A DNA stretch of 64,000 nt from positions 62,001-126,000 of the IMG/VR virus record IMGVR_UViG_3300045972_000138; one strand, 5' to 3'. The notes below the pieces were generated by a model that worked only from the letters and a program-made list of their open reading frames with translations, searched no databases and was not told the DNA's origin. Below, piece after piece: positions 4,660 through 59,158 of the stretch. Every line of letters starts with the position of its first letter. The first letter of the stretch is position 1. Both the position numbers and the translations under genes were made by a program.

Positions 4660-5604
4660 ATGTTCTCGAAACTATGGTTAGTGGTATTATTACTAATATC
4701 ACCGATAGTTTATGCTGAAGATTTTATCCGCACAGACGCCTGGGGTAAGACTGAAGCAGAAGCACGTCACGCAGCATTCATTAAGGCAATTGAACTTAAG
4801 GTTGGTGTGCTTATGCTTAGTGATAGAGACACAAAAAATTATGAACAGGTAAAGAATGATATCTATGCTTACAGCAGTGGATATGTTACTGATTATAAGA
4901 CTATTTCCGTAGACACCGAAGGCGACGGTGTGCGTGTTATTGTGGATTCTAAGGTTTCTACAAGCAAAATTAAAAATAGAATATTAATTGGAAATAGTTC
5001 ATCATCTATAAATGGTGAATTAGCATCAGCAAGCTACAATACATATAAGCATACGAAAGATACGGCAGATGACCTCCTGCGTAAGGCATTATCTAGCTAT
5101 CCGACAAATGCGTATACTGTCTTGCTACGAACTTCGAATGTAAAATCTAGTAATAACAGAGAACTTGAACTTGATATCGACTTCTCTATTGAACTAAAGA
5201 CTGAGTTTATACAGAACTTAGTGGAAACATTGAATGTTATCGAAAATCCCAATATAAAAGAGTACGCAAGTAAAATTATTATTGACAACACTGAATTAAT
5301 ACAGTTGTTCAACCACCAAAATAAGTTTTATCTAGATGATAATATAACACAGCAGGTCCTTTATAAATATTTGGTACCAAGTAATGCACGGCTAAAAATA
5401 AGTTTAGAAGGCGATAATGGTGTGTTATATGCAACCTGTAGACCAGTAGCGACATTAGTGAAACTGAGTGGGGTGAATGTAACATTCTATGTTGGGCAGA
5501 AAAAGTATTACGGTACGCAAATACGGGATATACGTGAAATAATGCAAGATGTTACTGATATCAAATTATCAGTAGTTAATGTAAAGGATTGCCAAAATGA
5601 ATGA
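4660..5604 (+). CDS. Exported protein with LPP20/FlgT-N-like N-terminal domain
   Basis: Signal peptide ending VYA; WGKTEAEARHAAFIKAIELKVG...SSGYVTDYKTIS. Confidence 0.55.
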   Translation: MFSKLWLVVLLLISPIVYAEDFIRTDAWGKTEAEARHAAFIKAIELKVGVLMLSDRDTKNYEQVKNDIYAYSSGYVTDYKTISVDTEGDGVRVIVDSKVSTSKIKNRILIGNSSSSINGELASASYNTYKHTKDTADDLLRKALSSYPTNAYTVLLRTSNVKSSNNRELELDIDFSIELKTEFIQNLVETLNVIENPNIKEYASKIIIDNTELIQLFNHQNKFYLDDNITQQVLYKYLVPSNARLKISLEGDNGVLYATCRPVATLVKLSGVNVTFYVGQKKYYGTQIRDIREIMQDVTDIKLSVVNVKDCQNE

Positions 5605-5686
5605 TACACCCACTCAAGTACCGGCAGATTGGACTGAAGAGGAAGAAGAAGCCTGGCACGATTTGGAGGATAAGAAAAAAGGTTGA
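5597..5686 (+). CDS. Small acidic peptide (29 aa), not in supplied ORF track
   Basis: RBS AAGGA; MNDTPTQVPADWTEEEEEAWHDLEDKKKG; overlaps upstream stop. Confidence 0.5.
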   Translation: MNDTPTQVPADWTEEEEEAWHDLEDKKKG

Positions 5687-5711
5687 CCGATTTTAGCCTT
5701 TACATTAAAAT
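5683..5711 (+). promoter_or_regulatory. sigma70-type promoter with 11-bp inverted repeat flanking -10
   Basis: TTGACC-17-TAAAAT; TTTAGCCTTTA (5692-5702) / TAAAGGCTAAA (5711-5721). Confidence 0.65.
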
Positions 5712-5730
5712 AAAGGCTAAATACTTTTAC

Positions 5731-5753
5731 GCAATAGAGATAGACTCAGTTGC
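5731..5753 (+). promoter_or_regulatory. 5'UTR hairpin with AUAGA loop (copy 1)
   Basis: GCAAU-A-GAG-AUAGA-CUC-A-GUUGC; shares TAGAGATAGACT with 8088-8099. Confidence 0.5.
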
Positions 5754-5778
5754 ACTTAACTTTACATAGGATTTATGT

Positions 5779-6150
5779 ATGACAACAAAAACTAAGCAAT
5801 CTGCTCTCGAGCAGTACCGTAACACTTACTCTGGTAAGGCTCTGTTACAAAAACATTCCCTTACAGAAACTGGCCTTTGGCGCATTCGCGGAGAAGATCC
5901 GAATTGCGATTTTGGTGGCCATCACTACCAGCCAGATCTTGGCGTAGTTGAAGGCACATTAAAAGACATTATCGATTACGCTGTGGGCCTCAAGAACTTT
6001 TGGACTTGGGGAGGCGGTGGCGATATTTCGTTGGTTGAAGTCAAGAAGATTGATCCACAAGCCAACAAGCGTATTGCAGAACTTCGCAAGGAATCGGAAG
6101 ATCTGCAAGCTCGTCTCAAAGAAATCAACACTGAATTGAAGGGAGCATAA
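5779..6150 (+). CDS. Hypothetical protein with C-terminal coiled coil
   Basis: RBS AGGA downstream of promoter; ORF track. Confidence 0.7.
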   Translation: MTTKTKQSALEQYRNTYSGKALLQKHSLTETGLWRIRGEDPNCDFGGHHYQPDLGVVEGTLKDIIDYAVGLKNFWTWGGGGDISLVEVKKIDPQANKRIAELRKESEDLQARLKEINTELKGA

Positions 6151-6151
6151 T

Positions 6152-6490
6152 ATGCCTTGCAGAGACTACTACGACGATCATCCCGAAGCATACTTCAAAG
6201 ATATCAAAGAACCCGCGTTGAAGAAGCAAATTGCATTTGCAGAATCCGCACTGTGCCAAACACTTGCTGCATTGGAAATTGCACATACAGATATGGCAAG
6301 TCCCGCAGAATTTTACGACCTAATTAACTTTAAAGAAGCAGGTATTACAAAGGTGGAACTAAAGAAATGGCATAAGGAACATAAGGTACTTGATGCTAAA
6401 CACCGCAAAGAAGAATCTGAAAAGAATCTACGTGCAACTGCACTTGCAAAATTAACAGCCGAAGAACGTAAAGCATTGGGAGTAAAATAA
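6152..6490 (+). CDS. Hypothetical protein
   Basis: RBS GGAG; translationally coupled. Confidence 0.7.
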   Translation: MPCRDYYDDHPEAYFKDIKEPALKKQIAFAESALCQTLAALEIAHTDMASPAEFYDLINFKEAGITKVELKKWHKEHKVLDAKHRKEESEKNLRATALAKLTAEERKALGVK

Positions 6491-7518
6491 TGTCTGATAA
6501 GAAATATGATACACTGGTTTTGATTGGGCGTTTTCAACCATTCCATACTGCTCACTTGTTGTTAGTCCAACGTGCAACCGCACTTGCTAACAAGGTTGTA
6601 TTTATTGTGGGCTCGGCCAATCAGCCGCGCACCTACAAAAATCCATTTACGTTCGAAGAACGCAGAATTATGATTTACGAAGCTACTCGCGGTATGGCTG
6701 GCCCACTTAGCTTTTATATCGAGCCAAATCCGGATAGTTTATACAACGATCAGGCGTGGGCTGTGCGTGTGCAGGCACTTGTAGGAAAACACACTAAACC
6801 CGGCGATAAGGTTGGCATTATTGGGCATAAGAAAGATCCTTCCAGTTTTTACTTGGATATGTTCCCTCAGTGGGGATTCGAGTCTGTGGAACTTCTTGAA
6901 CCATTGGATGCATCTGAGATCCGTGATTTGTACTTCAAGCGCGACATTAATATGAAATTTATTAAGCATGTTGTACCACCAACTACATATGACTTTCTTG
7001 ATGCATTTGCAGACGGTCCAGCACACGAACAAATTATCAAAGAACGCGAATTTGTGGCAAACTACAAGAAGCAATATGCGTCATTGCCGTATCCGCCAAT
7101 CTTTAGCACCGCTGACGCTGTGGTTATTTGCAGTGGTCACGTGTTGATGGTGAAGCGCCGTGCAGAACCCGGCAAGGGGTTGTGGGCATTGCCCGGTGGA
7201 TATGTAAATGCAAACACTGATCGCACCGTAGAGGATGCAATGCTACGCGAACTGCGCGAAGAGACACTAATTAAGGTGCCTGCACCAGTATTACGTGGTA
7301 GCATTGTACGTAGCAAGGTGTTTGATGCAATTGATCGTAGCCCACGTGGTCGTATTATCACTCACGCATTCTTTATTAAGTTACCCGATGGTGAACTGCC
7401 AAAAGTAAAAGGTGCAGACGATGCCGAAAAAGCAAAGTGGGTACCTATTGCAAGCGTAAAGAGTGATGAATGCTTTGAAGATCACTTCGAAATTTTGCAA
7501 CACTTTTTAGGAGCATAA
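6490..7518 (+). CDS. nadM: Bifunctional NMN adenylyltransferase / ADP-ribose Nudix hydrolase (NadM-Nudix, NatV-like)
   Basis: IGRFQPFHTAH (HxxH), GSAN..RT.KNPF, Nudix box GG......AMLRELREET, DRSPRGR, FEDH. Confidence 0.92.
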   Translation: MSDKKYDTLVLIGRFQPFHTAHLLLVQRATALANKVVFIVGSANQPRTYKNPFTFEERRIMIYEATRGMAGPLSFYIEPNPDSLYNDQAWAVRVQALVGKHTKPGDKVGIIGHKKDPSSFYLDMFPQWGFESVELLEPLDASEIRDLYFKRDINMKFIKHVVPPTTYDFLDAFADGPAHEQIIKEREFVANYKKQYASLPYPPIFSTADAVVICSGHVLMVKRRAEPGKGLWALPGGYVNANTDRTVEDAMLRELREETLIKVPAPVLRGSIVRSKVFDAIDRSPRGRIITHAFFIKLPDGELPKVKGADDAEKAKWVPIASVKSDECFEDHFEILQHFLGA

Positions 7519-7519
7519 T

Positions 7520-7819
7520 ATGTTTATTGGACATGGTATTAGCAGGCTTAGCGACTTTGATAAGCATCCGCCAAAGTTTATTGTGGTGCAGGAATACACT
7601 GAAAGCCATATGGGTGCAAATTACGGTCCACCAGATCCACCGCCATCCATGGAAACATCCACTTACATGGGTATTCGTGGATTTAAGACTACGGACGAAG
7701 TTGCTGCGTGGATTAAGCAGGAACGAGAAAGTCCCTACAGCAAAAACAAATCATTCAAAGTATTTGCAATTGATGCAATGACTGTTAAGACTGATATTAC
7801 TGTGTCTTTAGGAGCATAA
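7520..7819 (+). CDS. Hypothetical protein
   Basis: RBS GGAG; operon packing. Confidence 0.6.
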   Translation: MFIGHGISRLSDFDKHPPKFIVVQEYTESHMGANYGPPDPPPSMETSTYMGIRGFKTTDEVAAWIKQERESPYSKNKSFKVFAIDAMTVKTDITVSLGA

Positions 7820-7820
7820 G

Positions 7821-8057
7821 GTGCATTACTATGTACATATCCAACGGTTAAATGGTAAGCACGACTATTGGGAATTGGCATATGATTTACATAACAAAGG
7901 ATTTGGAACTAGTGTGGATTATTTTCCGGGAGACGATATGCTAACGCCTATAGTCTATCCACACTTAAGATTTAACGACGAAGGAGATGCTGTTGCATTT
8001 TGTTTAGCACACGGATGCACCTACAGTACAAAAATACCGGAGAACGTTGACAAGTAA
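7821..8057 (+). CDS. Small protein of FxDxxDAxxF paralog family
   Basis: GTG start, RBS GGAG; C-terminal RFNDEGDAVAFCL. Confidence 0.6.
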   Translation: MHYYVHIQRLNGKHDYWELAYDLHNKGFGTSVDYFPGDDMLTPIVYPHLRFNDEGDAVAFCLAHGCTYSTKIPENVDK

Positions 8058-8075
8058 ATGGTTATTTGTTAAACT
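8047..8075 (+). promoter_or_regulatory. sigma70-type promoter of NAMPT
   Basis: TTGACA-17-TAAACT. Confidence 0.7.
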
Positions 8076-8085
8076 TAAAACAAGT

Positions 8086-8104
8086 CCTAGAGATAGACTT
8101 TAGG
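8086..8104 (+). promoter_or_regulatory. 5'UTR hairpin with AUAGA loop (copy 2)
   Basis: CCUAGAG-AUAGA-CUUUAGG; alternative pairing AAGUC (8082-86) / GACUU (8096-8100). Confidence 0.5.
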
Positions 8105-8129
8105 CAATTAAATTTAAAGGAACTTTAAA

Positions 8130-9560
8130 ATGAAAAACTCAATTATACTCGATACTGACAGCTACAAGGTCAGTATGTGGAAACAATACCCAGCAGGAAC
8201 TGAATATGTCTATTCTTACATCGAATCTCGTGGTGGAAAATACACTACAACAGAATTTCTCGGGGTACAGGCTCTTGCACGGTATCTTGCGACGCCGATC
8301 ACACAAGAACAAATTGATTATGCAGAAAAAATCTGGACTGCTCACGGAGAGCCTTTCAACCGCGAAGGTTGGCAATACATCCTTGATCAACATGAAGGCA
8401 AGCTTCCTCTCCGGATTTGCGCCGCCAAGGAAGGCCTTATTATTCCGACTAAAAACGTCCTCTGCACAATCGAAAATACAGATCCAAAATGCTTCTGGCT
8501 TACAACTTGGGTGGAAACAGCGGCGCTACGTGCAATCTGGTATCCTACCACTGTCGGAACTACTTCGTGGCACATTAAGCAAGAAATTCTGAACTACTTG
8601 GAGAAGAGCGGTGACCCCACTACTATTGGTTTTAAGCTTCACGATTTTGGTGCCCGCGGCGTTTCTAGCCTGGAGAGCGCTGGTATCGGGGGAGCAGCTC
8701 ACCTCGTCAATTTTATGGGTACTGACACTATGTCTGGTGTGCTCCATGTTATTGATGTATATGGCGGCGATGTTTGCGGATTCAGTATCCCAGCCGCAGA
8801 ACACAGCACCATCACAAGTTGGGGCCGAGACAACGAAGTAGACGCTTACCGCAATATGGTTAAGCAGTTTGGCGGCGATGGCAAGATTGTTGCTGTGGTC
8901 TCTGACTCGTACGACATTTACAAAGCCTGCGAAATGTGGGGAACGGAACTAAAAGATGATGTTATCAATTCTGGGGCTACTGTCGTCATCCGCCCTGACT
9001 CTGGCGACCCTGTGGTGGTTGTACCAAAAATGCTTCGCATACTGGCTGAACGTTTTGGGTTCACAGTCAATGCCAAGGGTTACAAGGTCCTTAATAATGT
9101 TCGCGTTATCTGGGGTGATGGTATTAATAGCGTTAGCCTGGGTAGCATTCTTCGGTGTGTTGTTGATGTTGCCGGCTTTTCTGCCGATAACATAGCATTT
9201 GGTATGGGTGGTGGACTGCTTCAACAATGCGATCGTGACACATTGAAGTTTGCTATGAAGTGTTCTTCGGTCGGTGTGCGCGAGATGGTATCAATTCCAG
9301 AATTGTCTACAGACAAGATGGAACTTGTATGGCGCGATGTGTTTAAAGATCCGGCAACTGATCCAGGCAAGGCTTCTAAGAAGGGCCGTGTTACATTGTG
9401 GGAAAGCGGTGGCGAGTATGAGACTGCGGTTTATCCTCTTACCCGTTGGACCGACAAAGGTACTGATGGTTGGAAGGAAGTATTGGAAACATACTTCTTG
9501 GATGGTGAAGTACAATTTACACAGACTTTTGACCAAGTACGAGCAAATAGTATGCTATAA
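8130..9560 (+). CDS. nadV: Nicotinamide phosphoribosyltransferase (NAMPT/NadV)
   Basis: TDSYK, LHDFGARG, NFMGTDT, PAAEHST, VSDSYD, VIRPDSG, FGMGGGLLQ, RDTLKFAMK. Confidence 0.93.
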   Translation: MKNSIILDTDSYKVSMWKQYPAGTEYVYSYIESRGGKYTTTEFLGVQALARYLATPITQEQIDYAEKIWTAHGEPFNREGWQYILDQHEGKLPLRICAAKEGLIIPTKNVLCTIENTDPKCFWLTTWVETAALRAIWYPTTVGTTSWHIKQEILNYLEKSGDPTTIGFKLHDFGARGVSSLESAGIGGAAHLVNFMGTDTMSGVLHVIDVYGGDVCGFSIPAAEHSTITSWGRDNEVDAYRNMVKQFGGDGKIVAVVSDSYDIYKACEMWGTELKDDVINSGATVVIRPDSGDPVVVVPKMLRILAERFGFTVNAKGYKVLNNVRVIWGDGINSVSLGSILRCVVDVAGFSADNIAFGMGGGLLQQCDRDTLKFAMKCSSVGVREMVSIPELSTDKMELVWRDVFKDPATDPGKASKKGRVTLWESGGEYETAVYPLTRWTDKGTDGWKEVLETYFLDGEVQFTQTFDQVRANSML

Positions 9561-9641: not shown

Positions 9642-11582
9642 ATGGCTGACCTTTTTAAAATGCTTGCAGACGAGAAGAAGAATTTACGTCAAGAGACATA
9701 CTCGATTCAAGAGTATCTCGAGGCGTGTAAATCTGATCAACTACTATATGCCAGTTCGGCAGAGAGGATGTTAAAAGCAATTGGTGAGCCTGAGCTTGTC
9801 AATACGCACAAAGACGCACGTCTAAGCAGAATTTTCCACAACAGAACAATTAAGCGTTATCCGGCATTCCACGATTTTTACGGAATGGAAGATGCAGTTG
9901 AACGTATTGTAGGATACTTTACCCACGCTGCACAAGGCCTAGAAGAAAAGAAACAAATTCTTTATCTTTTGGGACCAGTTGGCGGCGGCAAGAGTTCTAT
10001 TGCAGAACGCCTTAAAGAATTAATCCAAAAGTTTCCAATTTATGTGCTTGCAGATAAAGACGGAAATCTTAGTCCTGTTTTTGAATCTCCATTAAACTTA
10101 TTCGGCAAAGACCAGTACGGCGCTGTACTTGAAAAAGAATATGGCATTCACAAACGTTATCTTTCCGATGTATTAAGCCCGTGGGCAATTAAGCGCCTAA
10201 AAGAATACGGTAACGATAAGACTAAATTTAAAGTTGTAAGAGTGTATCCAAGCAAGTTGGAACAAATTGGTGTTATCAAAACCGAACCAGGCGATGATAA
10301 TAATCAAGACATTAGCAACTTAGTTGGTAAAACCAATATTCGTATGTTGGAACACTTTGACCAAAACGATCCAGATAGCTACTCATTCTCCGGTGCTTTG
10401 TGCCGCGGCAATCAGGGTATTATGGAATTCGTGGAAATGTTCAAGGCTCCTATCAAAATGTTACACCCGTTGCTTACAGCAACACAGGAAGGTAACTACG
10501 TTGGTACAGAAGGTATTAGTGCTATTCCTTTCAACGGTACAGTACTTGCTCACAGCAATGAAAGCGAATGGCAGACATTTAAGAATAACAAGAATAATGA
10601 AGCTTTCATTGATCGCGTTTATGTTGTTAAGGTTCCATATTGCTTACGTATTACTGACGAGAAGAATATTTACTCTAAAATGCTAGAATCGTCTAGCTTA
10701 GGCAATGCACCGTGTGCAGCAGAGACATTGGATATTTTGTCCAAATTCTGCGTATTAACACGCCTACAAGAGCATGAGAACTCAAACGCCTTCAGCAAGA
10801 TGCGTGTGTACGATGGTGAAGCGATTAAAGATACAGATCCTAAAGCAAAGAGTCTGCAGGAATATCGTGATGCAGCAGGTGTAGATGAAGGTATGTCAGG
10901 TATTAGTACACGTTTTGCATTTAAGATTCTTTCTAAGACATTTAACTTTGATTCAGCAGAAATTGCAGCCGATCCAGTGCACCTAATGTTTGTATTGGAA
11001 GAAGCAATTAAGCAAGAACAGTTTGGCGAAGAAAAGCAAACAAAGTATATGAACTTTATCAAAGAATACTTAGCACCCAAGTATGCAGAACAGTTAAGTA
11101 ACGAAATTCAGAAAGCGTACTTAGAAAGCTACAGCGATTATGGTCAAAACTTGTTTGATCGTTATGTCGAATACGCCGATGCGTGGATACAGGAAATTGA
11201 TTACAAAGATCCAGATACTGGTAATTTATTTGATCGCGCAGTTCTTAATAAGGAACTTGAAAAGATCGAAAAGCCGGCAGGCATTGCCAATCCTAAGGAC
11301 TTCCGCAACGAAGTTGTTAACTTTGTATTGCGTGCCCGTGCTAAACATCCAGAGGGTGGTGTAAAATGGACATCTTACGAAAAACTACGCGAAGTAATTG
11401 AACGCAAGATGTTTGCAAGCACAGAAGAATTACTTCCTATTATTAGCTTTGGCGCTAAGAGCAAAGAAGATGATCAAAAGAAACACGACGAATTTGTTAA
11501 GAGGATGATGTCCAAAGGATATACTGCTATGCAAGTCAAGCGACTTGTTGAATGGCATATGAGAACTGCAAAGAGTTCCTAA
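9642..11582 (+). CDS. yeaG: PrkA/YeaG-family AAA+ serine kinase
   Basis: GPVGGGKS Walker A, EPGDDNNQDIS, GALCRGNQG..EFVEMFKAPIK, VKVPYCLR. Confidence 0.93.
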   Translation: MADLFKMLADEKKNLRQETYSIQEYLEACKSDQLLYASSAERMLKAIGEPELVNTHKDARLSRIFHNRTIKRYPAFHDFYGMEDAVERIVGYFTHAAQGLEEKKQILYLLGPVGGGKSSIAERLKELIQKFPIYVLADKDGNLSPVFESPLNLFGKDQYGAVLEKEYGIHKRYLSDVLSPWAIKRLKEYGNDKTKFKVVRVYPSKLEQIGVIKTEPGDDNNQDISNLVGKTNIRMLEHFDQNDPDSYSFSGALCRGNQGIMEFVEMFKAPIKMLHPLLTATQEGNYVGTEGISAIPFNGTVLAHSNESEWQTFKNNKNNEAFIDRVYVVKVPYCLRITDEKNIYSKMLESSSLGNAPCAAETLDILSKFCVLTRLQEHENSNAFSKMRVYDGEAIKDTDPKAKSLQEYRDAAGVDEGMSGISTRFAFKILSKTFNFDSAEIAADPVHLMFVLEEAIKQEQFGEEKQTKYMNFIKEYLAPKYAEQLSNEIQKAYLESYSDYGQNLFDRYVEYADAWIQEIDYKDPDTGNLFDRAVLNKELEKIEKPAGIANPKDFRNEVVNFVLRARAKHPEGGVKWTSYEKLREVIERKMFASTEELLPIISFGAKSKEDDQKKHDEFVKRMMSKGYTAMQVKRLVEWHMRTAKSS

Positions 11583-12856
11583 TGTCCGATTATACAATCA
11601 TCGACAGGAGAGTAAATCCTAAGGGTAAAAATCTCTCCAATAGACAACGATTCCTTGAACGTACAAAGCAGTGGGTAAAGCAAAAGGTACGTGAGAAAAG
11701 TGTGAATAGAGATATTACATCTACAGATGGTGAAAATATCTCTATTTCAAAAGATGATATTGCCGAACCACAATTTGACTACGATAGACAAAAGGGTGTA
11801 TGGGATCGTGTTTTACCTGGTAACAAGGAATTTGTCCCTGGCGACAAAATCAAGAGAGAACAGGGCGGCCAGGGTAAGGGTAAGGATGCAAGCGATCAGG
11901 GAGAAGGTACTGACGATTTTGTATTCACTATTTCAAAAGAAGAATATTTAGATATTCTATTTGAGAATTTAGAGTTACCCGATCTTATAAAGCAAAGTGA
12001 AGATGCAGCAGTCGCATTTGCTAGAAAGCGTACAGGTTTTTCAACATCCGGCAGTCCAAACAACCTAGATTTAGTAAGGAGTCTTAAGAACTCTTTAGGG
12101 CGCAGAATTGCATTAGGTCTTCCGTTAGATAAAAGAATAAAAGAAAACGAAGAATTGCTACTCACAGCAACAGAAGATGAAAAAGTTGTATTACTTGAAG
12201 AAATACAACGATTGCGTACACGCCGTGCAGCGGTAGCATATATTGATCAGGTTGATGTAAGATATAAGCGTCATTCGCAAACGCCACTTCCAAATAGTCA
12301 GGCGGTTGTATTCTGTCTCATGGATGTTTCCGGTAGTATGGGCAAAGACGAAAAAGATACAGCGAAACGATTCTTTTTATTATTGTACCTATTCCTACAA
12401 AGAAAATATTTAAAAGTAGATATTGTATTTGTACGACATACAACCGTTGCATCCGAATGTTCTGAACACGAGTTCTTTTATGGACAGGAAAGTGGTGGTA
12501 CAATTGTCAGTACCGGTGTAAAGGAAGTTAACAACATTGTTAGGGAAAGATATCCACTAGATTCCTGGAATGTTTATGTAGTGCAGGCATCTGATGGTGA
12601 TAATGTTGATAGCGATAGCAAGGCACTTACAGAAGAAGTAGAAAACTTATTACCAAAGTGCCAGTATTATGTCTATGATGAAGTATTACAGAAGAATACA
12701 TACCGCAGTGCAGGACATACAACAACTGTTTTAAGTGTTATGAAAGAGTTATCGGACCATAATGAAAATCTTGCAATAACATCAACCGACTCAGTAGAAA
12801 GCGTGCTTACAGCATTTAGAGAGATTTTTACAAAAAAGGCAAATAATGGCAAATAA
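11582..12856 (+). CDS. yeaH: YeaH/YhbH (DUF444) vWA-domain protein
   Basis: IIDRRVNPKGKNLSNRQRF, MDVSGSM MIDAS, ESGGTIVS, WNVYVVQASDGDN; start coupled to yeaG stop. Confidence 0.92.
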   Translation: MSDYTIIDRRVNPKGKNLSNRQRFLERTKQWVKQKVREKSVNRDITSTDGENISISKDDIAEPQFDYDRQKGVWDRVLPGNKEFVPGDKIKREQGGQGKGKDASDQGEGTDDFVFTISKEEYLDILFENLELPDLIKQSEDAAVAFARKRTGFSTSGSPNNLDLVRSLKNSLGRRIALGLPLDKRIKENEELLLTATEDEKVVLLEEIQRLRTRRAAVAYIDQVDVRYKRHSQTPLPNSQAVVFCLMDVSGSMGKDEKDTAKRFFLLLYLFLQRKYLKVDIVFVRHTTVASECSEHEFFYGQESGGTIVSTGVKEVNNIVRERYPLDSWNVYVVQASDGDNVDSDSKALTEEVENLLPKCQYYVYDEVLQKNTYRSAGHTTTVLSVMKELSDHNENLAITSTDSVESVLTAFREIFTKKANNGK

Positions 12857-14316: not shown

Positions 14317-15219
14317 TTATTTCTGTTTAAGTTTATCTAACATTTCTTGTGCCTTTTCAACACTAATTAGATATCTGCCTGTCCTGTTAGGATCGGCAGC
14401 TTTCTGCAAAAATTCTACACTAAGTCCCGACGTCTTTGGTCTTGACTCTGGTGCATCATTAGTTCCTGCAGGTATACCACCCGTTTCACCAGGCAAATAA
14501 TTATTTACGCCACCGCTTTGTTGCTTACGAGATTGTAATGCTGCCATTGCATCGTTTGCACTAATCATAGGCCTAGATACAGAACCATCAACTACACCTT
14601 GCAAATATTGGGTATTCATATTATCACCGGGTGCAGCTTGAGCCCCACCTGCACCTAAAGCACCTAGCCCAACCATTGCTGCACCTGCTAGGTTACTTTT
14701 CCAACCCTCTGCTACCATAGCTGCTAATCTTTCTTCATAACTTTCTGTTGTAGAATGCTTATGTGTTATCTTCATAGCCTTTTCTGCTCTACGATCGACT
14801 TTCTTTTGTGTATGTGGATTAGAATAATACTCGTCGGGCTTAACACCAGATCTATACTTATGCATTGCAGCCGCAACACTCTTTTCTGTACCAGGGCTTA
14901 ATTCGTTTAATTTCTGCTCTGAATGCTTATGTGTTATCTTCATAGCTTTTTCTGCTCTACGATCAACTTTCTTTTGCGTATGCGGATTTGAATAATACTC
15001 ATCTGGTTTAACACCGGATCTGTACTTGTGCATTGCGGCGGCAACATTCTTTTCTGTGCCTGCACTTAATTCGTTAACTTGAACTGTCTGTCCTTTCCAC
15101 TTATCGTGTACATCATTTAAAATATTTTCATAACTAACGTCTTGAGCAGGAGCGCAACGATTAAGTCCACCCATCATACCTTCGACAATTTGTTCTGCTA
15201 AGAGTTTAATGTGGTCCAT
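14317..15219 (-). CDS. Late, putative head-internal protein with internal tandem duplication
   Basis: Start reassigned to ATG 15219 (RBS AAGGA, late box 15243-15250); two ~52-aa repeats. Confidence 0.65.
   Translation of the reverse strand: MDHIKLLAEQIVEGMMGGLNRCAPAQDVSYENILNDVHDKWKGQTVQVNELSAGTEKNVAAAMHKYRSGVKPDEYYSNPHTQKKVDRRAEKAMKITHKHSEQKLNELSPGTEKSVAAAMHKYRSGVKPDEYYSNPHTQKKVDRRAEKAMKITHKHSTTESYEERLAAMVAEGWKSNLAGAAMVGLGALGAGGAQAAPGDNMNTQYLQGVVDGSVSRPMISANDAMAALQSRKQQSGGVNNYLPGETGGIPAGTNDAPESRPKTSGLSVEFLQKAADPNRTGRYLISVEKAQEMLDKLKQK
14753..15075. repeat. Two ~155-bp direct repeats (14753-14907, 14921-15075), period 168 bp
   Basis: Encode NELS(A/P)GTEK(N/S)VAAAMHKYRSGVKPDEYYSNPHTQKKVDRRAEKAMKITHKHS twice; mostly synonymous differences. 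Confidence 0.9.
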
Positions 15220-45761: not shown

Positions 45762-45769
45762 GATAAATA
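45762..45769 (+). promoter_or_regulatory. Late promoter box GATAAATA
   Basis: Heads the 45788-50435 operon. Confidence 0.65.
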
Positions 45770-45787
45770 CTAAAAACGAGGATAACA

Positions 45788-46396
45788 ATGTCGACAGATC
45801 TTGATAGTATTAAAAAGACTTTAGTGAGTATTTCTAAGGGTAACAATATCCTTGATACTTTGCTTGAGTTTGAGCGCACATTAGACAATGCAGAGATTTT
45901 TGCATACAAGAACTGGATTCTTGGCGAATTAGTGGAAGGTCCTATTATCAGTAGGTACTGGTATAAGACTGTATGGATGTATCCATATGCTATGATGCCC
46001 GATCCTGATGCAGGATTACGCCTAACTAAACTTGGTGCTAAAGTTAACTTTAGAAAAGGCACATTCAAGAAGCCTGTTAAAGTACACGGCCCCGAAGATT
46101 GGCAAAATCCAGAGTCTAAAAAAGCCAAAATGGCAGAACACGAAATATGGTTGGTTACTATTGACATGCCGTTAAAGTATATCAATCACGGTTTAGACGA
46201 ACTTGATGATATCATTGCACAAGACATTGAAGAAACTAATGCTGCACTTGCCGATGCGTATGAAGAAATGCCAGAGCAAGATATGGGCATGGACCAAACT
46301 GGTATGGATCAAGGCGGAATGGGCGGTGACATGGGTAGTATGGATATGTCTGGTGGAGCAGGTGGTCAAGATATGCAACAAGGTGGACCACAATGA
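45788..46396 (+). CDS. Conserved phage hypothetical protein
   Basis: LLEFERTLD...YAYKNW-like, GELVEGP, MPDPDAG; G/M/Q-rich tail. Confidence 0.75.
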   Translation: MSTDLDSIKKTLVSISKGNNILDTLLEFERTLDNAEIFAYKNWILGELVEGPIISRYWYKTVWMYPYAMMPDPDAGLRLTKLGAKVNFRKGTFKKPVKVHGPEDWQNPESKKAKMAEHEIWLVTIDMPLKYINHGLDELDDIIAQDIEETNAALADAYEEMPEQDMGMDQTGMDQGGMGGDMGSMDMSGGAGGQDMQQGGPQ

Positions 46397-50504: not shown

Positions 50505-50512
50505 GATAAATA
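50505..50512 (+). promoter_or_regulatory. Late promoter box GATAAATA
   Basis: Heads structural block. Confidence 0.7.
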
Positions 50513-50530
50513 ACAGTAAAGAGGAATACT

Positions 50531-50968
50531 ATGGCAATTAGAAAATCAGTTTATATGCTCACAAACACAGGAACCAAATGGAATGCGTTCGGTGAGCCTA
50601 TCAGAGCCGATGCTTACTATGGCTATACTGACGGTATTCACACCGTACAAGTAATATATCAGAATTTTGTAGGCGGATTTGGTTTACAAGGCACACTAGC
50701 ATTAGACCCTCAACCAGAAGATTGGTTTTATATTAAAATGAATCTTTGGGGCGATGTGAATACACCATTTATGACTTTCCCAGTTGATCCAATGGCACCT
50801 ACCGGTTCAAATGGCGGCGATACTGGCTCTATGGCAACAACGTTTATGGGTAACTTCGTTTACCTAAGAGCAGTATTGACACGAGATTATATAGCGCCTA
50901 TCACAGTAGATCAGGCGTGGCAAGATTGGCAATGGGGCCAAATTGATTCAGTATTATTGAGCTTATAA
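50531..50968 (+). CDS. Putative virion structural protein
   Basis: Late box; YYGYTDGIHTV...F.G..GLQGTLA..P...DWF, F.GNFVYLRA. Confidence 0.65.
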   Translation: MAIRKSVYMLTNTGTKWNAFGEPIRADAYYGYTDGIHTVQVIYQNFVGGFGLQGTLALDPQPEDWFYIKMNLWGDVNTPFMTFPVDPMAPTGSNGGDTGSMATTFMGNFVYLRAVLTRDYIAPITVDQAWQDWQWGQIDSVLLSL

Positions 50969-50978
50969 GGAATAGAAT

Positions 50979-53957
50979 ATGATAGTTGGTCAAAATGCTC
51001 TGTTAAATCAATATGTCCCAACATTTTATATTAAGAATATTGTTGACGGCCAAGGGCTTCGTTACGATGCTGTAAGAAAAGCATACGTTAACGCAGACGT
51101 TGGTGGGTCAGGCACGGCACAAAAATTAGGTGACTTATTAAATGTTACACCTACAGTAGATAGTCCTAATCCTACCCTTGCAGATGGGCAGGCATTAGTA
51201 TATAACGCATTAACTAGTCTATGGCAAAACCAGTTCGTAGACTATAATACTCTGCTAAACAAACCGGTCATTCCAACAAATAGCAGTTTTAGTTTCATTG
51301 GGTTAAGTGATACTGCCAAACCTTCGCTTCCGAGCGGTTATGTAAAATGGAATTCAGCTGGAACACAGCTGGTCTACTCTACCACTATACCAGCTTCGAA
51401 TATTTCAGGTCTTGCTACTGTGGCTACTACCGGTGATTATAATGACCTTATAAACAAGCCGACTACATTAGGTACGGTTACAACAGTTTCTGTTGTATCG
51501 GCTAATGGCGTTAGTGGCTCTGTTGCTAACCCAACATCCACACCGGCCATAACATTAACTTTAGGTAATATTACGCCAACCAGCGTAACAGCAACTGGCA
51601 CAATTTCGGGTAGCAATTTTAGTGGATCTAGCACTGGTACAAATACAGGTGATCAAACTATTACGTTAACCGGTGATGTAACTGGTTCAGGTAAAACAAG
51701 TTTCCCAACTACATTAGCGACGGTAAATAGCTCGCCAGTAACTAATTCCTTTCAAAAGGTAACAGTTAACGGTAAAGGTTTAGTAACTGCTACTTCTTTA
51801 GTATTAGCAGCAGATATTACAACTACTCTTGGTTATACTCCGTATAACTCTACAAATCCAGCAGGTTACACAAGTAACTTAGGTACAGTAACGAGCGTAG
51901 GTGCAACAGGTTCTGCAGCAATATTAGTTAGCGGTAGTCCAATTACTACATCAGGTTCATTTGCAATTGATTTAGCAAATACTACAGTAATTGCTGGTTC
52001 ATATACTAATGCAAACATAACAATCGATTCTAAAGGTCGTATTACTTCTGCAGTTAACGGAGTATCTGGTGGTGTAACATCGTTCAACACACGAACAGGT
52101 GCTATTACATTAACTAATAATGACGTTACAACAGCATTAGGTTATACTCCATATAATTCAACTAACCCTGCAGGTTATATTTCTAGCGCAGTTACTTCTG
52201 TAACTGGCCAAGGTAATGTAAGCGGATTAACATTATCGGGTACCGTTACTTCTACAGGTGCATTAACTCTTGGTGGTTCTTTAGTATTAACTAGCGCACA
52301 AATTACAACAGGATTAGGTTATGTCCCTTACAATTCTACTAATCCTGCTGGTTATACGAGTAATACTGGTACTGTCACGTCGGTAGGATTAACTGGCTCT
52401 GTTGATGTTACAGTCACAGGTACTTCACCTATAACTACTACGGGTTCCTTTGGTCTTGCACTTTCTAATACAACAGTTGCACCAGGTACATACGGATCTA
52501 GCGCAAGTGTTCCACAATTTACTGTTGACGTAAAAGGTCGTGTAACAAATGTTACAAACATCCCAATTAGCGGCGCAGCAGGTGGCACAGTTACAAGTGT
52601 TAGTGGTACTGGTACAGTAAGTGGCTTAACCTTATCAGGGACTGTAACAAGTTCGGGTAATTTAGTTCTTGGCGGTTCTTTAGTATTAACTAGCACACAG
52701 ATTACAACAGGTCTCGGATTTACGCCATATAACGCAACAAATCCAGCAGGATATACAAGCAACACAGGTACTGTTACATCCGTAACAGGATCAGGCGGAA
52801 CTACAGGCTTAACATTAGCCGGTGGCCCAATTACTACAGCAGGAACGCTAACACTTGGTGGAACGCTTTCTATTGCAAACGGTGGTACAGGTGCAACAAC
52901 AGCGGTAAATGCTATAAATGCGTTGTTACCTGCTCAAACAGGTAATGCAGGCAAATATTTAACAACAGACGGAACTACTGTTTCTTGGACAGCAGAAGCA
53001 GCAGAAGTGTTAAGCTTTAATGGTCGCACAGGAAATGTTACATTGGTAAGTTCGGATGTTACAACAGCGTTAGGATATACTCCTGGCACAGGTAGCGTAA
53101 CATCTGTAGGCGGTACAGGAACAGTAAGCGGTTTAACACTAACTGGATCAGTTACAACATCTGGTAATTTAACACTTGGCGGCACACTAGTATTAACAAG
53201 TGGCCAAGTAACAACAGCTTTAGGTTATACTCCTGGTACTGGTAATGGTTCGGTTACTTCTGTAACAGTAAATGGTACCGCAGGTAGAATAACAAGCACA
53301 GGTTCGCCAATCACAAATAGTGGATCTATTACGGTAGACTTAGCAACATCAGGCGCAACAGCAGGTACATATGGTAGTTCAACTACTGTACCACAAATTG
53401 TTGTCGATACATATGGTCGTATTACTTCTGTAAATAACATAGGTATTCCACTAACAACAGGTACTGTCACTTCTGTAGCGGCCGCAGGCGCACAAGGTGT
53501 AACAGTTTCCGGATCGCCTATTACAGGCGCAGGCACATTAAATATTGGATTAGGTGCAATTACTCCTACAAGCGTAGCAGCAACAGGCACAGTTACTGGT
53601 TCAAATTTAAGTGGAACAAACACAGGTGACCAAACAATTACAGCATCGGGTGATGCTACTGGTGTGTCTACAGGCACAGGAAATTCAACTGCATTACCGC
53701 TAACATTAGCAACAGTAAACGCCACACCAGGTACTTACGGAGATTCATCTAATATCTCCGTAGTAACGGTAAATAACAAAGGATTGGTAACTTCGGTAGT
53801 AACAACACCAGTTGATATAACAGTAAGTGATTTACTGCCAGCTGATGGTTCAACTACAGAAACATTTACCATAGCCACAAGGCATCAATATATTGTAACG
53901 GGAAGACTTGAAATAGTTGGTCACGTTATTAACAACGGGAGAATTGCAATTCTATGA
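50979..53957 (+). CDS. Repeat-rich tail fibre-like protein
   Basis: Thr/Gly/Ser-rich; repeated GTVTSV, YTxANITVDxxGRIT, LGYTPYN modules. Confidence 0.7.
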   Translation: MIVGQNALLNQYVPTFYIKNIVDGQGLRYDAVRKAYVNADVGGSGTAQKLGDLLNVTPTVDSPNPTLADGQALVYNALTSLWQNQFVDYNTLLNKPVIPTNSSFSFIGLSDTAKPSLPSGYVKWNSAGTQLVYSTTIPASNISGLATVATTGDYNDLINKPTTLGTVTTVSVVSANGVSGSVANPTSTPAITLTLGNITPTSVTATGTISGSNFSGSSTGTNTGDQTITLTGDVTGSGKTSFPTTLATVNSSPVTNSFQKVTVNGKGLVTATSLVLAADITTTLGYTPYNSTNPAGYTSNLGTVTSVGATGSAAILVSGSPITTSGSFAIDLANTTVIAGSYTNANITIDSKGRITSAVNGVSGGVTSFNTRTGAITLTNNDVTTALGYTPYNSTNPAGYISSAVTSVTGQGNVSGLTLSGTVTSTGALTLGGSLVLTSAQITTGLGYVPYNSTNPAGYTSNTGTVTSVGLTGSVDVTVTGTSPITTTGSFGLALSNTTVAPGTYGSSASVPQFTVDVKGRVTNVTNIPISGAAGGTVTSVSGTGTVSGLTLSGTVTSSGNLVLGGSLVLTSTQITTGLGFTPYNATNPAGYTSNTGTVTSVTGSGGTTGLTLAGGPITTAGTLTLGGTLSIANGGTGATTAVNAINALLPAQTGNAGKYLTTDGTTVSWTAEAAEVLSFNGRTGNVTLVSSDVTTALGYTPGTGSVTSVGGTGTVSGLTLTGSVTTSGNLTLGGTLVLTSGQVTTALGYTPGTGNGSVTSVTVNGTAGRITSTGSPITNSGSITVDLATSGATAGTYGSSTTVPQIVVDTYGRITSVNNIGIPLTTGTVTSVAAAGAQGVTVSGSPITGAGTLNIGLGAITPTSVAATGTVTGSNLSGTNTGDQTITASGDATGVSTGTGNSTALPLTLATVNATPGTYGDSSNISVVTVNNKGLVTSVVTTPVDITVSDLLPADGSTTETFTIATRHQYIVTGRLEIVGHVINNGRIAIL

Positions 53958-59104: not shown

Positions 59105-59112
59105 GATAAATA
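59105..59112 (+). promoter_or_regulatory. Late promoter box GATAAATA
   Basis: Followed by AAGCC-ACAAU-GGCUU hairpin and AGGAG. Confidence 0.65.
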
Positions 59113-59158
59113 ACAGGTAAGAAAGCCACAATGGCTTCACAACTAGGAGATTCTTAAA

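Follow-up and report, generated by a model that had tools for sequence, protein, structure and literature searches.

Two NAD-salvage genes of a phage are each preceded by the same short sequence, and the question raised by this locus is whether the repeat is an accident or a control element and, if it is the latter, whether it works as DNA or as RNA. Depleting NAD+ is a widespread way of defending against phages, and one known phage answer is NARP2, which consists of NAMPT and NMNAT-Nudix. A leader RNA on both NARP2 cistrons that is common to bacterial nadM-nadV is a 55-nt object bearing on how the pathway is throttled or induced.

The genes and leaders of the phage locus

The window analyzed here is a stretch of 64,000 nucleotides from a 237,609-bp phage record. 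The exact 12-mer TAGAGATAGACT is present in it at 5735-5746 and 8088-8099, heading the nadM-Nudix operon and nadV, respectively. Both positions had been claimed in an earlier reading made from the sequence alone (hereafter the sequence-only reading) and were confirmed. No third exact copy was found when the entire record was searched, and the one match with a single mismatch lies within a coding region. Each 12-mer belongs to a leader composed of a hairpin (H1), an unpaired linker and a second hairpin (H2) that holds the Shine-Dalgarno sequence (SD). The features of the locus are as follows.

5683-5711, plus strand: sigma70-like promoter of the nadM operon (-35 TTGACC at 5683-5688, 17-nt spacer, -10 TAAAAT at 5706-5711)
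5731-5753, plus strand: H1 of copy 1, GCAAUAGAG-AUAGA-CUCAGUUGC, with 8 pairs and one A.A mismatch; pentaloop at 5740-5744
5763-5779, plus strand: H2 of copy 1, UACAUA-GGAUU-UAUGUA, with the SD (GGA) in the loop; minimum-free-energy fold; helix 2 covaries
5779-7518, plus strand: copy-1 operon, consisting of ORF 5779-6150 (123 aa, phrog_33851), ORF 6152-6490 (112 aa) and nadM-Nudix 6490-7518
8047-8075, plus strand: sigma70-like promoter of nadV (-35 TTGACA, 17-nt spacer, extended -10 TGtTAAACT)
8082-8085, plus strand: AAGU 5' tail of the nadV leader; in relatives, the nadV leaders have a conserved AAGUCC immediately past their -10 boxes
8086-8104, plus strand: H1 of copy 2, CCUAGAG-AUAGA-CUUUAGG, with 7 pairs; pentaloop at 8093-8097; minimum-free-energy fold, supported by covariation
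8105-8112, plus strand: linker of copy 2, CAAUUAAA, single-stranded and G-poor
8113-8129, plus strand: H2 of copy 2, UUUAAAG-GAA-CUUUAAA, with the SD (AAGGA) at its top; minimum-free-energy fold; helix 2 covaries
8130-9560, plus strand: nadV (NAMPT), 476 aa; Pfam NAMPT_N and NAPRTase; matches to PDB 7YQO and human NAMPT entries

The identification of the downstream genes as NMNAT-Nudix and NAMPT held when Pfam and the PDB were consulted. ORF 6490-7518 encodes NMNAT plus Nudix, with a full-length match to PDB 2QJO/2QJT in addition to the Pfam matches, and the phage protein aligns end to end with the 341-aa Synechocystis enzyme, leaving no extra domain. NAMPT and a bifunctional NMNAT-Nudix are thus found together in one phage, which is the gene-pair criterion for NARP2, or NAD salvage II, as defined previously (bioRxiv 10.1101/2024.02.11.579819), and the nadM and nadV pair is this counter-defense pathway. 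NARP2 overproduces NAD+ and consumes PRPP, and the KVP40 operon is toxic in E. coli (bioRxiv 10.1101/2024.02.11.579819); tight control of the pathway is therefore plausible. We found no described regulation of NARP2. Neither Pfam nor PHROGs provided a function for the small ORFs that follow some copies of the motif.

Both promoters were identified by a consensus scan, without transcription start data for that of the nadM operon, and each has 10/12 consensus matches, with the TG also present upstream of nadV. The nadV promoters of relatives read TTGACA-17-TATACT and are at an equal distance from AAGUCC. The start of the nadV leader is placed within AAGU at 8082-8085, 6-7 nt past the -10 box; this is inferred and has not been measured. 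The 12-mer had been put about 10-20 nt past a sigma70 -10 box, which is roughly correct, as the measured distances are 24 nt for copy 1 and 13 nt for copy 2. An inverted repeat at 5692-5721 overlaps the nadM-operon promoter.

The sequence-only reading had described G-C-closed stems with an AUAGA loop and outer arms that differ between the copies and still pair, and this description of H1 held. It missed the second hairpin (5763-5779 and 8113-8129) with the SD in its loop. H1 of copy 1 is the minimum-free-energy fold and its columns covary in alignments A1 and A3. In copy 1, the final paired base of H2 is the A of the start codon (5779-5781), and in copy 2 the start codon (8130-8132) follows H2 directly.

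The 12-mer repeat by itself is unremarkable. The window contains 436 same-strand repeat pairs of at least 12 nt, compared to 179 in shuffles, and the pattern with up to two mismatches is not enriched (6 observed, 5.1 expected). The chance expectation of such a repeat in two given 60-nt leaders is about 2.5e-4. The covariance model built from relatives (R1) has two matches in the whole record, and these are the two leaders, at 40 bits for copy 1 and 75.5 bits for copy 2.

A conserved two-hairpin leader before nadM and nadV

No match emerged when 50,697 phage records were searched for near-identity to the region, and relatives were reached via the NAMPT protein. In most of the 80 related phage contigs, the leader structure precedes nadV, nadM or a small ORF at the head of a nadM operon; the small ORFs downstream of the motif overlap the nadM start. 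It is also present in Synechococcus phage B23 and Xanthomonas phage RTH11, with exactly two matches each. All true copies in eight motif-bearing phage genomes (2.3 Mb), including five relatives of 216-364 kb, are within the NAD cluster. The range of the motif covers Alpha-, Beta- and Gammaproteobacteria, Campylobacterota, Cyanobacteria, a T4-like cyanophage and a Xanthomonas jumbo phage.

A scan of 151 sampled Gammaproteobacteria genomes with model R3, in which 37 candidates per genome were scored, gave two real matches, at nadV and nadM. The short H1 model R2 was lossy on bacterial genomes, missing known sites in 2/5 genomes with 150 candidates scored, and its other matches were coding or terminator-like chance matches. 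Since both scans scored a limited number of candidates, absence of the motif elsewhere in bacterial genomes is not established. In some bacteria, the motif lies inside the operon, between nadM and nadV, so the 5'-terminal position seen in phages is not essential. The sequence-only reading had proposed enrichment upstream of nadV/nadM in other phages and bacteria as a check of its inference, and the motif passed this check, being strongly and specifically associated with that position.

The leader of nadM and nadV consists of H1, an unpaired linker and H2. H1 has 7-9 bp, its stem sequence is free and its pentaloop is A-N-A-G-A, mostly AUAGA, with the second position varying in the order U>C>A>G. 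In one Burkholderiales clade, GUUGA replaces the ANAGA loop, and the loop class is common to both leaders within a genome. The pair closing the loop is G-C in 100 of 103 distinct hairpins, A-U in 2 and unpaired in 1. The linker is unpaired in every fold, measures 7-13 nt in 29/30 leaders and is G-poor in the model alignment. The loop of H2 contains the SD, and the 3' arm of this hairpin either reaches up to the AUG or overlaps it. The closing G of H1 is 36-47 nt upstream of the AUG in 29/30 leaders, and in 30/30 diverse leaders the minimum-free-energy structure is H1-linker-H2 with the SD in the loop. The conserved positions are few, namely the H1 loop, its closing pair and the SD. Conservation limited in this way is typical of protein operators. 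H2 alone is not specific to the motif, since about 10% of the other gene starts of this AT-rich phage have an H2-like hairpin that presents the SD in its loop, and weak matches of this kind were seen as well.

Covariation was compared with 500 shuffles and with slid pairing partners, and the observed values were above all of these controls. In 41 distinct phage leaders (A1), 90.8% of cells are paired, compared to 64% in shuffles and at most 49% with slid partners. The covariation score is 0.607, compared to 0.14, and double changes are numerous in both helices (6/7 H1 pairs and 5/6 H2 pairs). For H1 alone, across 103 distinct hairpins of phage and bacterial origin, 75% of cells are paired versus 49%, with a score of 0.62 versus 0.16. 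When 57 full leaders were aligned, 23 bacterial ones among them (A4), double changes were found at 15/15 pairs. G.U is common in the H1 stem, with 22 cases at pair 11-21 against 5 non-pairs in the 103 hairpins. All model matches are on the coding strand (97/97 in one search and 49/49 in another, 146 in total). Compensatory changes and a fixed sense-strand position before orthologous genes are the criteria for a structured cis-regulatory mRNA leader, and both are met.

Further pairings were considered. The sequence-only reading had described a mutually exclusive helix, AAGUC/GACUU, which is present in copy 2 and is not conserved: 44.9% of cells are paired compared to 44.1% in shuffles, and there is no covariation. 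The constant part is GUC/GAC alone, because GAC is part of the loop and closing pair. An anti-SD pairing between GUCCU of phage nadV leaders and AGGA was dropped on inspection, since it is confined to one phage subclass and absent from nadM leaders and bacteria. A loop-loop kiss was rejected as well; the UA of AUAGA is self-complementary, yet any of U, C, A and G can occupy position 2 of the loop. Complementarity of the loop to the linker or to the 3' arm of H2 is scattered (CUAUC in leader L110, UCUAUC in leader L104), with no consistent pattern seen.

A probable translational operator and its rivals

The central inference of the sequence-only reading, a cis-element coordinating both NAD-salvage transcripts, is supported by the enrichment and the stem covariation. 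Our main reading is that the conserved nadM/nadV leader is a translational operator, which we consider likely (probability of about 0.75), with transcription starts and regulation remaining inferred. H2 would gate the SD and AUG. H1, at the 5' edge of the ribosome-binding region, would be a specific dock for a trans-acting factor that reports NAD status, and its occupancy would decide 30S loading, so that the nadM and nadV cistrons would be co-regulated. Feedback may be autogenous, as at the thrS operator of E. coli, and the enzyme ligands NMN, ATP, NAD or ADP-ribose may modulate binding.

The identity of the factor is a separate and weaker claim. A protein encoded by the regulon, most likely NadM-Nudix, is our tentative candidate; there are no binding data, and we would put the odds slightly against it. 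To our knowledge, no RNA-binding activity has been described for NadM-Nudix or NAMPT. A loop that is near-invariant across several phyla would also be expected from an unchanging metabolite ligand, which counts against the protein reading. Of the mechanisms named in the sequence-only reading, an RNA site for the Nudix protein and a compact riboswitch are both still standing. The sequence is present only in DNA runs from pond metagenomes, and hence there is no RNA-seq support. If the binder is NadM-Nudix, this would be a new case of an enzyme doubling as a translational repressor.

The occurrence of the motif was also compared with that of nadM. The motif is present in 40/43 bacterial loci with an adjacent nadM and in 0/34 without nadM. 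Five genomes with a motif-free nadV yielded no NadM-Nudix, and one of these has only a Nudix-domain match. The pnuC and the nadR-like gene in the NAD island of phage G001 have no motif. Phylogenetically independent contrasts on the NAMPT tree gave about 5 in the same direction to 1 opposite (median p 0.22), which is not significant. The association is confounded by shared descent, and its support for NadM as the binder is only correlative.

Sensing of NAD-capped or other 5' ends by the Nudix domain was set aside, as the bacterial motif is also found between cistrons and there are no RNA data. Its appeal was that the apparent first nucleotide of the phage leaders is an A located 4-5 nt ahead of H1.

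The main rival to the translational operator is a very small riboswitch, which is possible and for which there are no ligand data. H1, perhaps with the H2 loop and linker, would bind an NAD-related metabolite and thereby change the accessibility of the SD and AUG in H2. Candidate ligands are nicotinamide or ADP-ribose as inducers and NAD+ or NMN as feedback signals. A bolder version, which is also possible, is a riboswitch of bacteria and phages that senses nicotinamide, ADP-ribose or NAD+ and would turn on translation of phage NARP2 and of the bacterial salvage II genes during NAD+ destruction, for example by Thoeris, DSR or SIR2-type defenses. In favor of a riboswitch, loop positions A1, A3, G4 and A5 are near-constant across distant phyla and phages of unrelated hosts, the genes whose 5' leaders carry the motif are metabolic and belong to one pathway, and the hosts have no obvious protein factor in common besides the regulon's own enzymes. 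The physiology also fits the NrtR/ADP-ribose logic (PMC2330246). Guanidine-II is a precedent for two-hairpin mini-riboswitches, and N-N-N-G-A loops are reminiscent of T-loop and GNRA-like folds, into which a base can intercalate. However, there are only about 7 specific conserved nucleotides outside the SD, and a core built from a junction or an internal loop is lacking. Neither a conserved alternative pairing nor a pseudoknot was found, and the folds of 30 leaders show no alternative. The existence of two loop classes, ANAGA and GUUGA, also argues against a riboswitch, as does the lack of the motif at nadV without nadM and at the pnuC and nadR-like gene of the same phage NAD island. No Rfam model is similar. 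A small tertiary ligand pocket nevertheless remains possible. If the ligand is a metabolite, the motif would be a third, unusually small class of NAD-related riboswitch.

A passive leader without a specific ligand is unlikely. Here, H1 would serve as a stabilizer or insulator at the 5' end, holding the G-poor linker open so that ribosomes can stand by in front of the structured SD hairpin, and the element would be carried along with the cassette. Three observations fit this explanation: H1 of the phages begins about 4-5 nt from where the transcript is inferred to start, the linker is G-poor and stays unpaired, and H2-like hairpins occur at other genes. On the other hand, a stabilizer or insulator does not need an invariant loop while its stem drifts freely. 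The element is also confined to nadM and nadV among hundreds of genes per genome and is found between cistrons within bacterial operons.

Another option is a DNA operator just past the promoters, bound by an NrtR-like or other NAD-responsive transcription factor; the sequence-only reading had named the NrtR-like form. The motif lies 13-24 bp after the -10 box, and NrtR is known to control nadM-nadV and prs-nadV (PMC2330246). However, neither copy in the window is spanned by GT-N7-AC, and there is no conserved palindrome. The arms covary and are not conserved, G.U is tolerated, and the conserved GAUAGAC block is asymmetric. All matches are on the coding strand, the motif also occurs inside operons, and the spacing is fixed to the start codon and not to the promoter. 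We consider this option very unlikely.

A chance 12-mer repeat or a recent functionless local duplication would agree with the 436 repeat pairs of the window and the unenriched mismatch-tolerant pattern, but it is virtually ruled out by more than 100 distinct homologous hairpins with compensatory changes at the equivalent position before orthologous genes.

Comparison with known systems

A permissive cmscan against Rfam 15 found no match overlapping the motif in window positions 5000-9000 (E<=10) or in 9 bacterial/phage loci (E<=5). The comparison with Rfam NAD+ riboswitches that the sequence-only reading had suggested therefore gave no match to those that Rfam 15 holds. Full-text literature searches did not find a comparable element. 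In bacteria, the known protein regulators NadR, NiaR and NrtR would be joined by one that acts on NAD salvage at the RNA level. It appears to be a portable regulatory cassette, since it moves with its genes between bacteria and phages of unrelated hosts.

The NAD+ riboswitches of class I (nadA motif) and class II (pnuC motif) likewise regulate NAD-metabolism genes in cis as leader RNAs, class II by acting on the SD. Their aptamers are built with bulged stems or pseudoknots, and the genes under their control are nadA or pnuC. The present motif, in contrast, is made of two plain hairpins and goes with nadM and nadV.

Guanidine-II (mini-ykkC) resembles the leader in having two small hairpins with a short linker, conserved small loops, covarying stems and an SD by the second hairpin. 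Both guanidine-II loops are ACGR and kiss each other. In the nadM/nadV leader, the special loop (ANAGA) is in H1 only and the H2 loop is the GGA-containing SD, so the ACGR criterion is not met, and a self-complementary kiss is ruled out because loop position 2 is free.

NrtR operators share the target genes, and the NrtR signal, ADP-ribose, is an NAD breakdown product (PMC2330246). NrtR sites are conserved 21-bp DNA palindromes with a GT-N7-AC core (Rodionov et al. 2008, PMC2330246), whereas covariation and strand mark the present element as an RNA structure.

The thrS leader, which is bound by ThrRS, and the T4 gene 43 and regA operators are autogenous translational operators. Like them, the nadM/nadV leader places a short hairpin, specific in its loop and free in its stem, shortly before the SD, keeps a fixed spacing to the AUG and has a single functional unit as its target. 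Unlike them, it has no shown binder, its SD is within a second conserved hairpin, and it spans several phyla and phages.

The lambdoid boxB pentaloops GAAGA/GAAAA are bound by N. The nadM/nadV leader differs from boxB in having no boxA or N-like protein, in being part of a translation-initiation region rather than an antitermination site, and in occurring in bacterial chromosomes as well. The two are alike in their short stem, in a purine-rich pentaloop ending in G/A-A, through which boxB is recognized, and in their presence in early phage transcripts.

Two hairpins before the NAD-salvage genes

The window covers bases 62,001-126,000 of a 237.6-kb IMG/VR virus record. The record represents a jumbo phage, comes from a pond metagenome and has a CheckV completeness of 62%. 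The 12-mer TAGAGATAGACT occurs exactly at 5735-5746 and 8088-8099, as the sequence-only reading had claimed, and has no further exact copy in the record. The repeat by itself says little: 436 same-strand repeats of at least 12 nt occur in the window, for which a repetitive coding region at 51.4-56.7 kb is mainly responsible. The chance expectation of such sharing between two given 60-nt leaders is about 2.5e-4. The 12-mer starts 24 nt (copy 1) and 13 nt (copy 2) past the respective -10 box.

Promoters, upstream hairpins (H1) and genes at the two copies
5683-5711: strong sigma70-like promoter before copy 1, TTGACC-17-TAAAAT
5731-5753: H1 of copy 1, loop AUAGA, G-C closing pair
5779-6150: first ORF of the copy-1 operon, 123 aa
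6152-6490: second ORF of the copy-1 operon, 112 aa
6490-7518: third ORF of the copy-1 operon, NMNAT plus Nudix (nadM), full-length match to 2QJO and 2QJT (NadM structures, Synechocystis and Francisella)
8047-8075: strong sigma70-like promoter before copy 2, TTGACA-17-TAAACT
8086-8104: H1 of copy 2, loop AUAGA, G-C closing pair
8130-9560: nadV (NAMPT), headed by copy 2

The earlier drawing of H1 held for both copies, but it had overlooked a second hairpin (H2) downstream. Since a DNA-level search of cultured phages found no close relative, relatives were fetched via the NAMPT protein (80 IMG/VR loci, 63-90% amino acid identity). Upstream of nadV in these loci, H1 recurs with stems that are unrelated yet complementary (e.g., CCCGAUG/CAUUGGG, CUAGGGG/CUCCUAG, GUAGGAG/CUUCUAC) around a constant G-AUAGA-C. 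The loop of H2 is the Shine-Dalgarno sequence (SD; AGGA/GGAG), its 3' arm adjoins or overlaps the AUG, and its stem also covaries (UUUAAA/UUUAAA, AUAAA/UUUAU, GUAAA/UUUAC, GAUAA/UUAUC, GUUAA/UUAAC). Across 41 distinct leaders, 90.8% of cells in the two helices are paired, versus 64% in shuffled leaders and at most 49% with slid partners. The covariation score is 0.607 versus 0.14, with double changes in 11 of 13 pairs.

R1, a covariance model built from the phage relatives, matches the whole 237.6-kb record only at the two sites in the window. Across the 80 loci it finds 97 sites, every one on the coding strand, and the ORF starting at the 3' end of the match is nadV, nadM-Nudix or a small ORF of 67-118 aa (phrog_12218, phrog_33851, phrog_37251) whose stop overlaps the nadM start. 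These small ORFs open nadM operons as their first cistrons, which is also the arrangement in the window. The 106-109-aa phrog_12218 proteins (L029:748-1071, L066:1746-2072, L096:1556-1882, L005:2361-2678), often the first cistron past the motif and immediately 5' of nadM, have an N-terminal coiled coil, a conserved WNHTDGCGW(F/H/Y)YE motif and no known function. A distinct 117-118-aa family (MSxxTFTIxKxYxLSAIDKAGKRVYYD...) takes the same slot. Good motif copies also lie about 1 kb 5' of nadV at L009:2906-2960, L022:2928-2981 and L007:2798-2856, with just tiny ORFs (21 and 14 aa) or a 76-aa ORF of HSFI repeats downstream; these could be decayed operon heads or leader peptides.

Gene specificity and bacterial distribution

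In the whole records of five relatives (216-364 kb; four at least 99% complete), true copies occur only before nadV, nadM or small ORFs heading the nadM operon; weak extra matches lack the H1 loop and fit only an H2-like SD hairpin. In a related phage of 353 kb, a complete NAD island (G001:C1:75500-89500) has the order motif, 88-aa ORF, nadM-Nudix, PnuC transporter, Band-7 protein, NadR-like NMNAT/ribosylnicotinamide kinase, motif, nadV. The first copy is 10.6 kb 5' of nadV; neither pnuC nor the nadR-like gene, which stand between the copies, has the motif. Even with the promoters counted in, the two leaders of this phage are almost identical, with one compensatory A-U to G-C difference. Synechococcus phage B23 (Kyanoviridae, 244 kb) and Xanthomonas phage RTH11 (312 kb) each have exactly two matches, before nadM and nadV. 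Scans of the KVP40, Acidovorax phage ACP17 and Ralstonia phage RsoM2USA genomes gave no match. Over eight motif-bearing phage genomes (about 2.3 Mb), all true copies are within the NAD-salvage cluster.

SD-in-loop hairpins adjoining AUG, such as UUUAAAGGAAAUUUAAAAUG, are found at about 29 of 301 gene starts in the window's own record, and in two other AT-rich jumbo phages, including at a probable structural gene, so ribosome-binding sites of this style are not limited to NAD genes.

The leader is not exclusive to phages, and the expectation that it would recur with covariation upstream of nadV and nadM elsewhere held. Among 80 bacterial nadV loci, the same architecture precedes nadM and/or nadV in Alphaproteobacteria (Caulobacter, Rhodospirillales, Acetobacteraceae, Aestuariispira), Betaproteobacteria-type lineages (Methylophilaceae, Tepidiphilus), Gammaproteobacteria (Chromatiales, Methylococcaceae, Thiothrix, Dyella, Oceanobacter, Bacterioplanoides, Thiodiazotropha, Hahellaceae), Campylobacterota (Sulfurovum) and a Xenococcaceae cyanobacterium. 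In a gapless alignment of 103 distinct H1 hairpins, pairing is 75% versus 49% shuffled and the covariation score 0.62 versus 0.16. Of these hairpins, 100 close with G-C and 2 with A-U, and in 1 the closing position is unpaired; pair 12-20 is A-U in 45, G-C in 26 and C-G in 21. Double changes occur in all 15 pairs of both helices in a 57-leader alignment (23 bacterial). The minimum-free-energy fold was H1, linker and H2, with the SD in the H2 loop, in 30 of 30 diverse leaders. In 29 of these the linker, conspicuously G-poor, measures 7-13 nt, and in 29 the closing G of H1 lies 36-47 nt 5' of the start codon (outlier, 61).

The broader model R3 gave 49 matches in 84 loci, all on the plus strand and each immediately 5' of nadM or nadV. 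It revealed loop variants, A-[U>C>A>G]-A-G-A and, in RTH11, GUAGA. A Burkholderiales clade (Comamonadaceae, Rhodoferax, Hylemonella; L108, L111, L115, L121, L122) keeps the architecture with loop GUUGA (GCCGA once) in both its nadM and nadV leaders. Shared by all these loops is the pentaloop form N-N-N-G-A. Two Acidobacteriota loci (L145, L181) have two hairpins with loops that are perhaps GGAUU and AGGRA, though this is uncertain. The differing loops may be lineage-specific recognition variants. Across 151 Gammaproteobacteria genomes, a scan that was unbiased though insensitive returned two real matches, at nadV and nadM. Since bacterial whole-genome scans are lossy, a wider bacterial regulon is not excluded. 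One AT-rich phage-type leader (AAGUCC...AUAGA) was on a 5.6-kb contig binned as Bacillaceae (DAIDKD010000215.1); its NAMPT is 63% identical to that of the window, and it is likely a phage contig wrongly binned in a bacterial MAG.

An RNA element, its mode of action and its partner

Sequence is not conserved in the H1 arms, which covary. G.U pairs are common and A.C are not (pair 11-21: 22 G.U/U.G versus 5 non-pairs), and R1 and R3 matches together are on the coding strand in 146 of 146 cases. Spacing is constant relative to the AUG, not to the promoter, and in several bacteria the motif is within the operon, between nadM and nadV. The sequence-only reading had offered an NrtR-like DNA operator as one option. 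This found no support, since the palindromes of NrtR operators are conserved, 21 bp long and built on a GT-N7-AC core (PMC2330246), unlike the covarying arms here. Covariation, G.U pairs, strand, AUG-fixed spacing and the lack of NrtR fit together make the element a sense-RNA structure. The mutually exclusive alternative helix that the sequence-only reading saw in copy 2 (AAGUC/GACUU) also lacks comparative support, pairing no better than shuffles (44.9% versus 44.1%).

Cmscan of the window and nine carrier loci with all 4,227 Rfam 15 families, the NAD+ riboswitch models included, found nothing at the motif (E up to 5-10). A full-text literature search found no paper on an RNA element of nadV, nadM, NAMPT or NARP2 genes (NARP2 being the phage pathway made of this pair). 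The NARP2 paper (bioRxiv 10.1101/2024.02.11.579819) reports that NAD+ is overproduced, that PRPP is consumed and that the KVP40 operon was toxic in E. coli; it describes no regulation. Because these searches were negative, we class the motif as a new family among structured cis-regulatory mRNA leaders. It resembles thrS-type operators, guanidine-II, boxB and T-loops, which are leads rather than tests.

The anatomy, conservation and gene specificity of the leader are shown; its control of translation initiation is inferred, without transcript data. H2 would hold the SD and AUG, and H1, 7-13 nt upstream, would sit at the 5' edge of the 30S-occupied region. With its invariant loop, one free loop position and free stem, H1 looks like a specific docking site. 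Since no conserved alternative pairing was found in the leaders, a bound factor more likely acts sterically or by stabilisation than through a classical switch from one fold to another.

The factor has to be present in cyanobacteria, proteobacteria and Campylobacterota as well as in cells that unrelated phages infect, and so should be a metabolite, a universal machine or a cassette product. We favour a cassette product, NadM-Nudix in particular, only tentatively (probability about 0.4) and without binding data, because the motif has very few conserved positions, both leaders of one genome have a common loop class, the pnuC and nadR-like genes of the same phage island lack the motif, and the bacterial motif tracks adjacent nadM. 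The motif is present at 40 of 43 bacterial loci having an adjacent nadM versus 0 of 34 with nadV only. The contrast extends to close relatives within Rhodanobacteraceae, where Dyella has the motif and Luteibacter lacks it. In five motif-less genomes no NadM-Nudix was found; one of them shows only a Nudix-domain match. This association is confounded by descent, as independent contrasts number about 5 to 1 (median p 0.22). Phage NadM-Nudix has no extra domain, and the protein is not known to bind RNA.

The most interesting alternative, which is possible and remains fully open, is that H1 is a riboswitch binding an NAD-related metabolite directly. A loop unchanged across phyla is also expected from a metabolite ligand. 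If nicotinamide or ADP-ribose were the inducer, or NAD+ the feedback signal, a riboswitch would tie NARP2 to NAD+ destruction. A purely structural role, as stabiliser or standby-site insulator, is unlikely and leaves the invariant H1 loop unexplained.

Other features near the locus

An 11-bp AU-rich inverted repeat at 5692-5721 (UUUAGCCUUUA...UAAAGGCUAAA) overlaps the -10 box of the nadM operon, and UACUUUUAC comes after it. An operator is one possibility for this repeat; another is a weak terminator for the preceding operon, where a 29-aa ORF ends at 5686. Between nadM and nadV, a 78-aa ORF (7821-8057) has a weak match to NDUS4, the complex I Fe-S protein 4 family (E 6e-4, below the Pfam cut-off). 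Directly 3' of nadV (9642-12856) are a PrkA-type AAA serine kinase (646 aa) and a DUF444/YeaH protein (434 aa), a pair normally in a bacterial stress/sporulation-associated cluster and here on a jumbo phage. A 160-nt unit occurs as two tandem copies, 88% identical, at 14753-15080. The large block of diverged direct repeats within coding sequence at 51400-56700 (units of about 90-230 nt, 60-88% identical, up to 9 copies) is likely a repeat-domain fibre or adhesin gene. Finally, a repeated block, GATAAATAAC...AGAGG...ATG, lies just 5' of start codons at 45762-45792, 50505-50535 and 59105-59135, and may be the phage's late promoter, since it includes a T4-type late-promoter-like TAAATA box.
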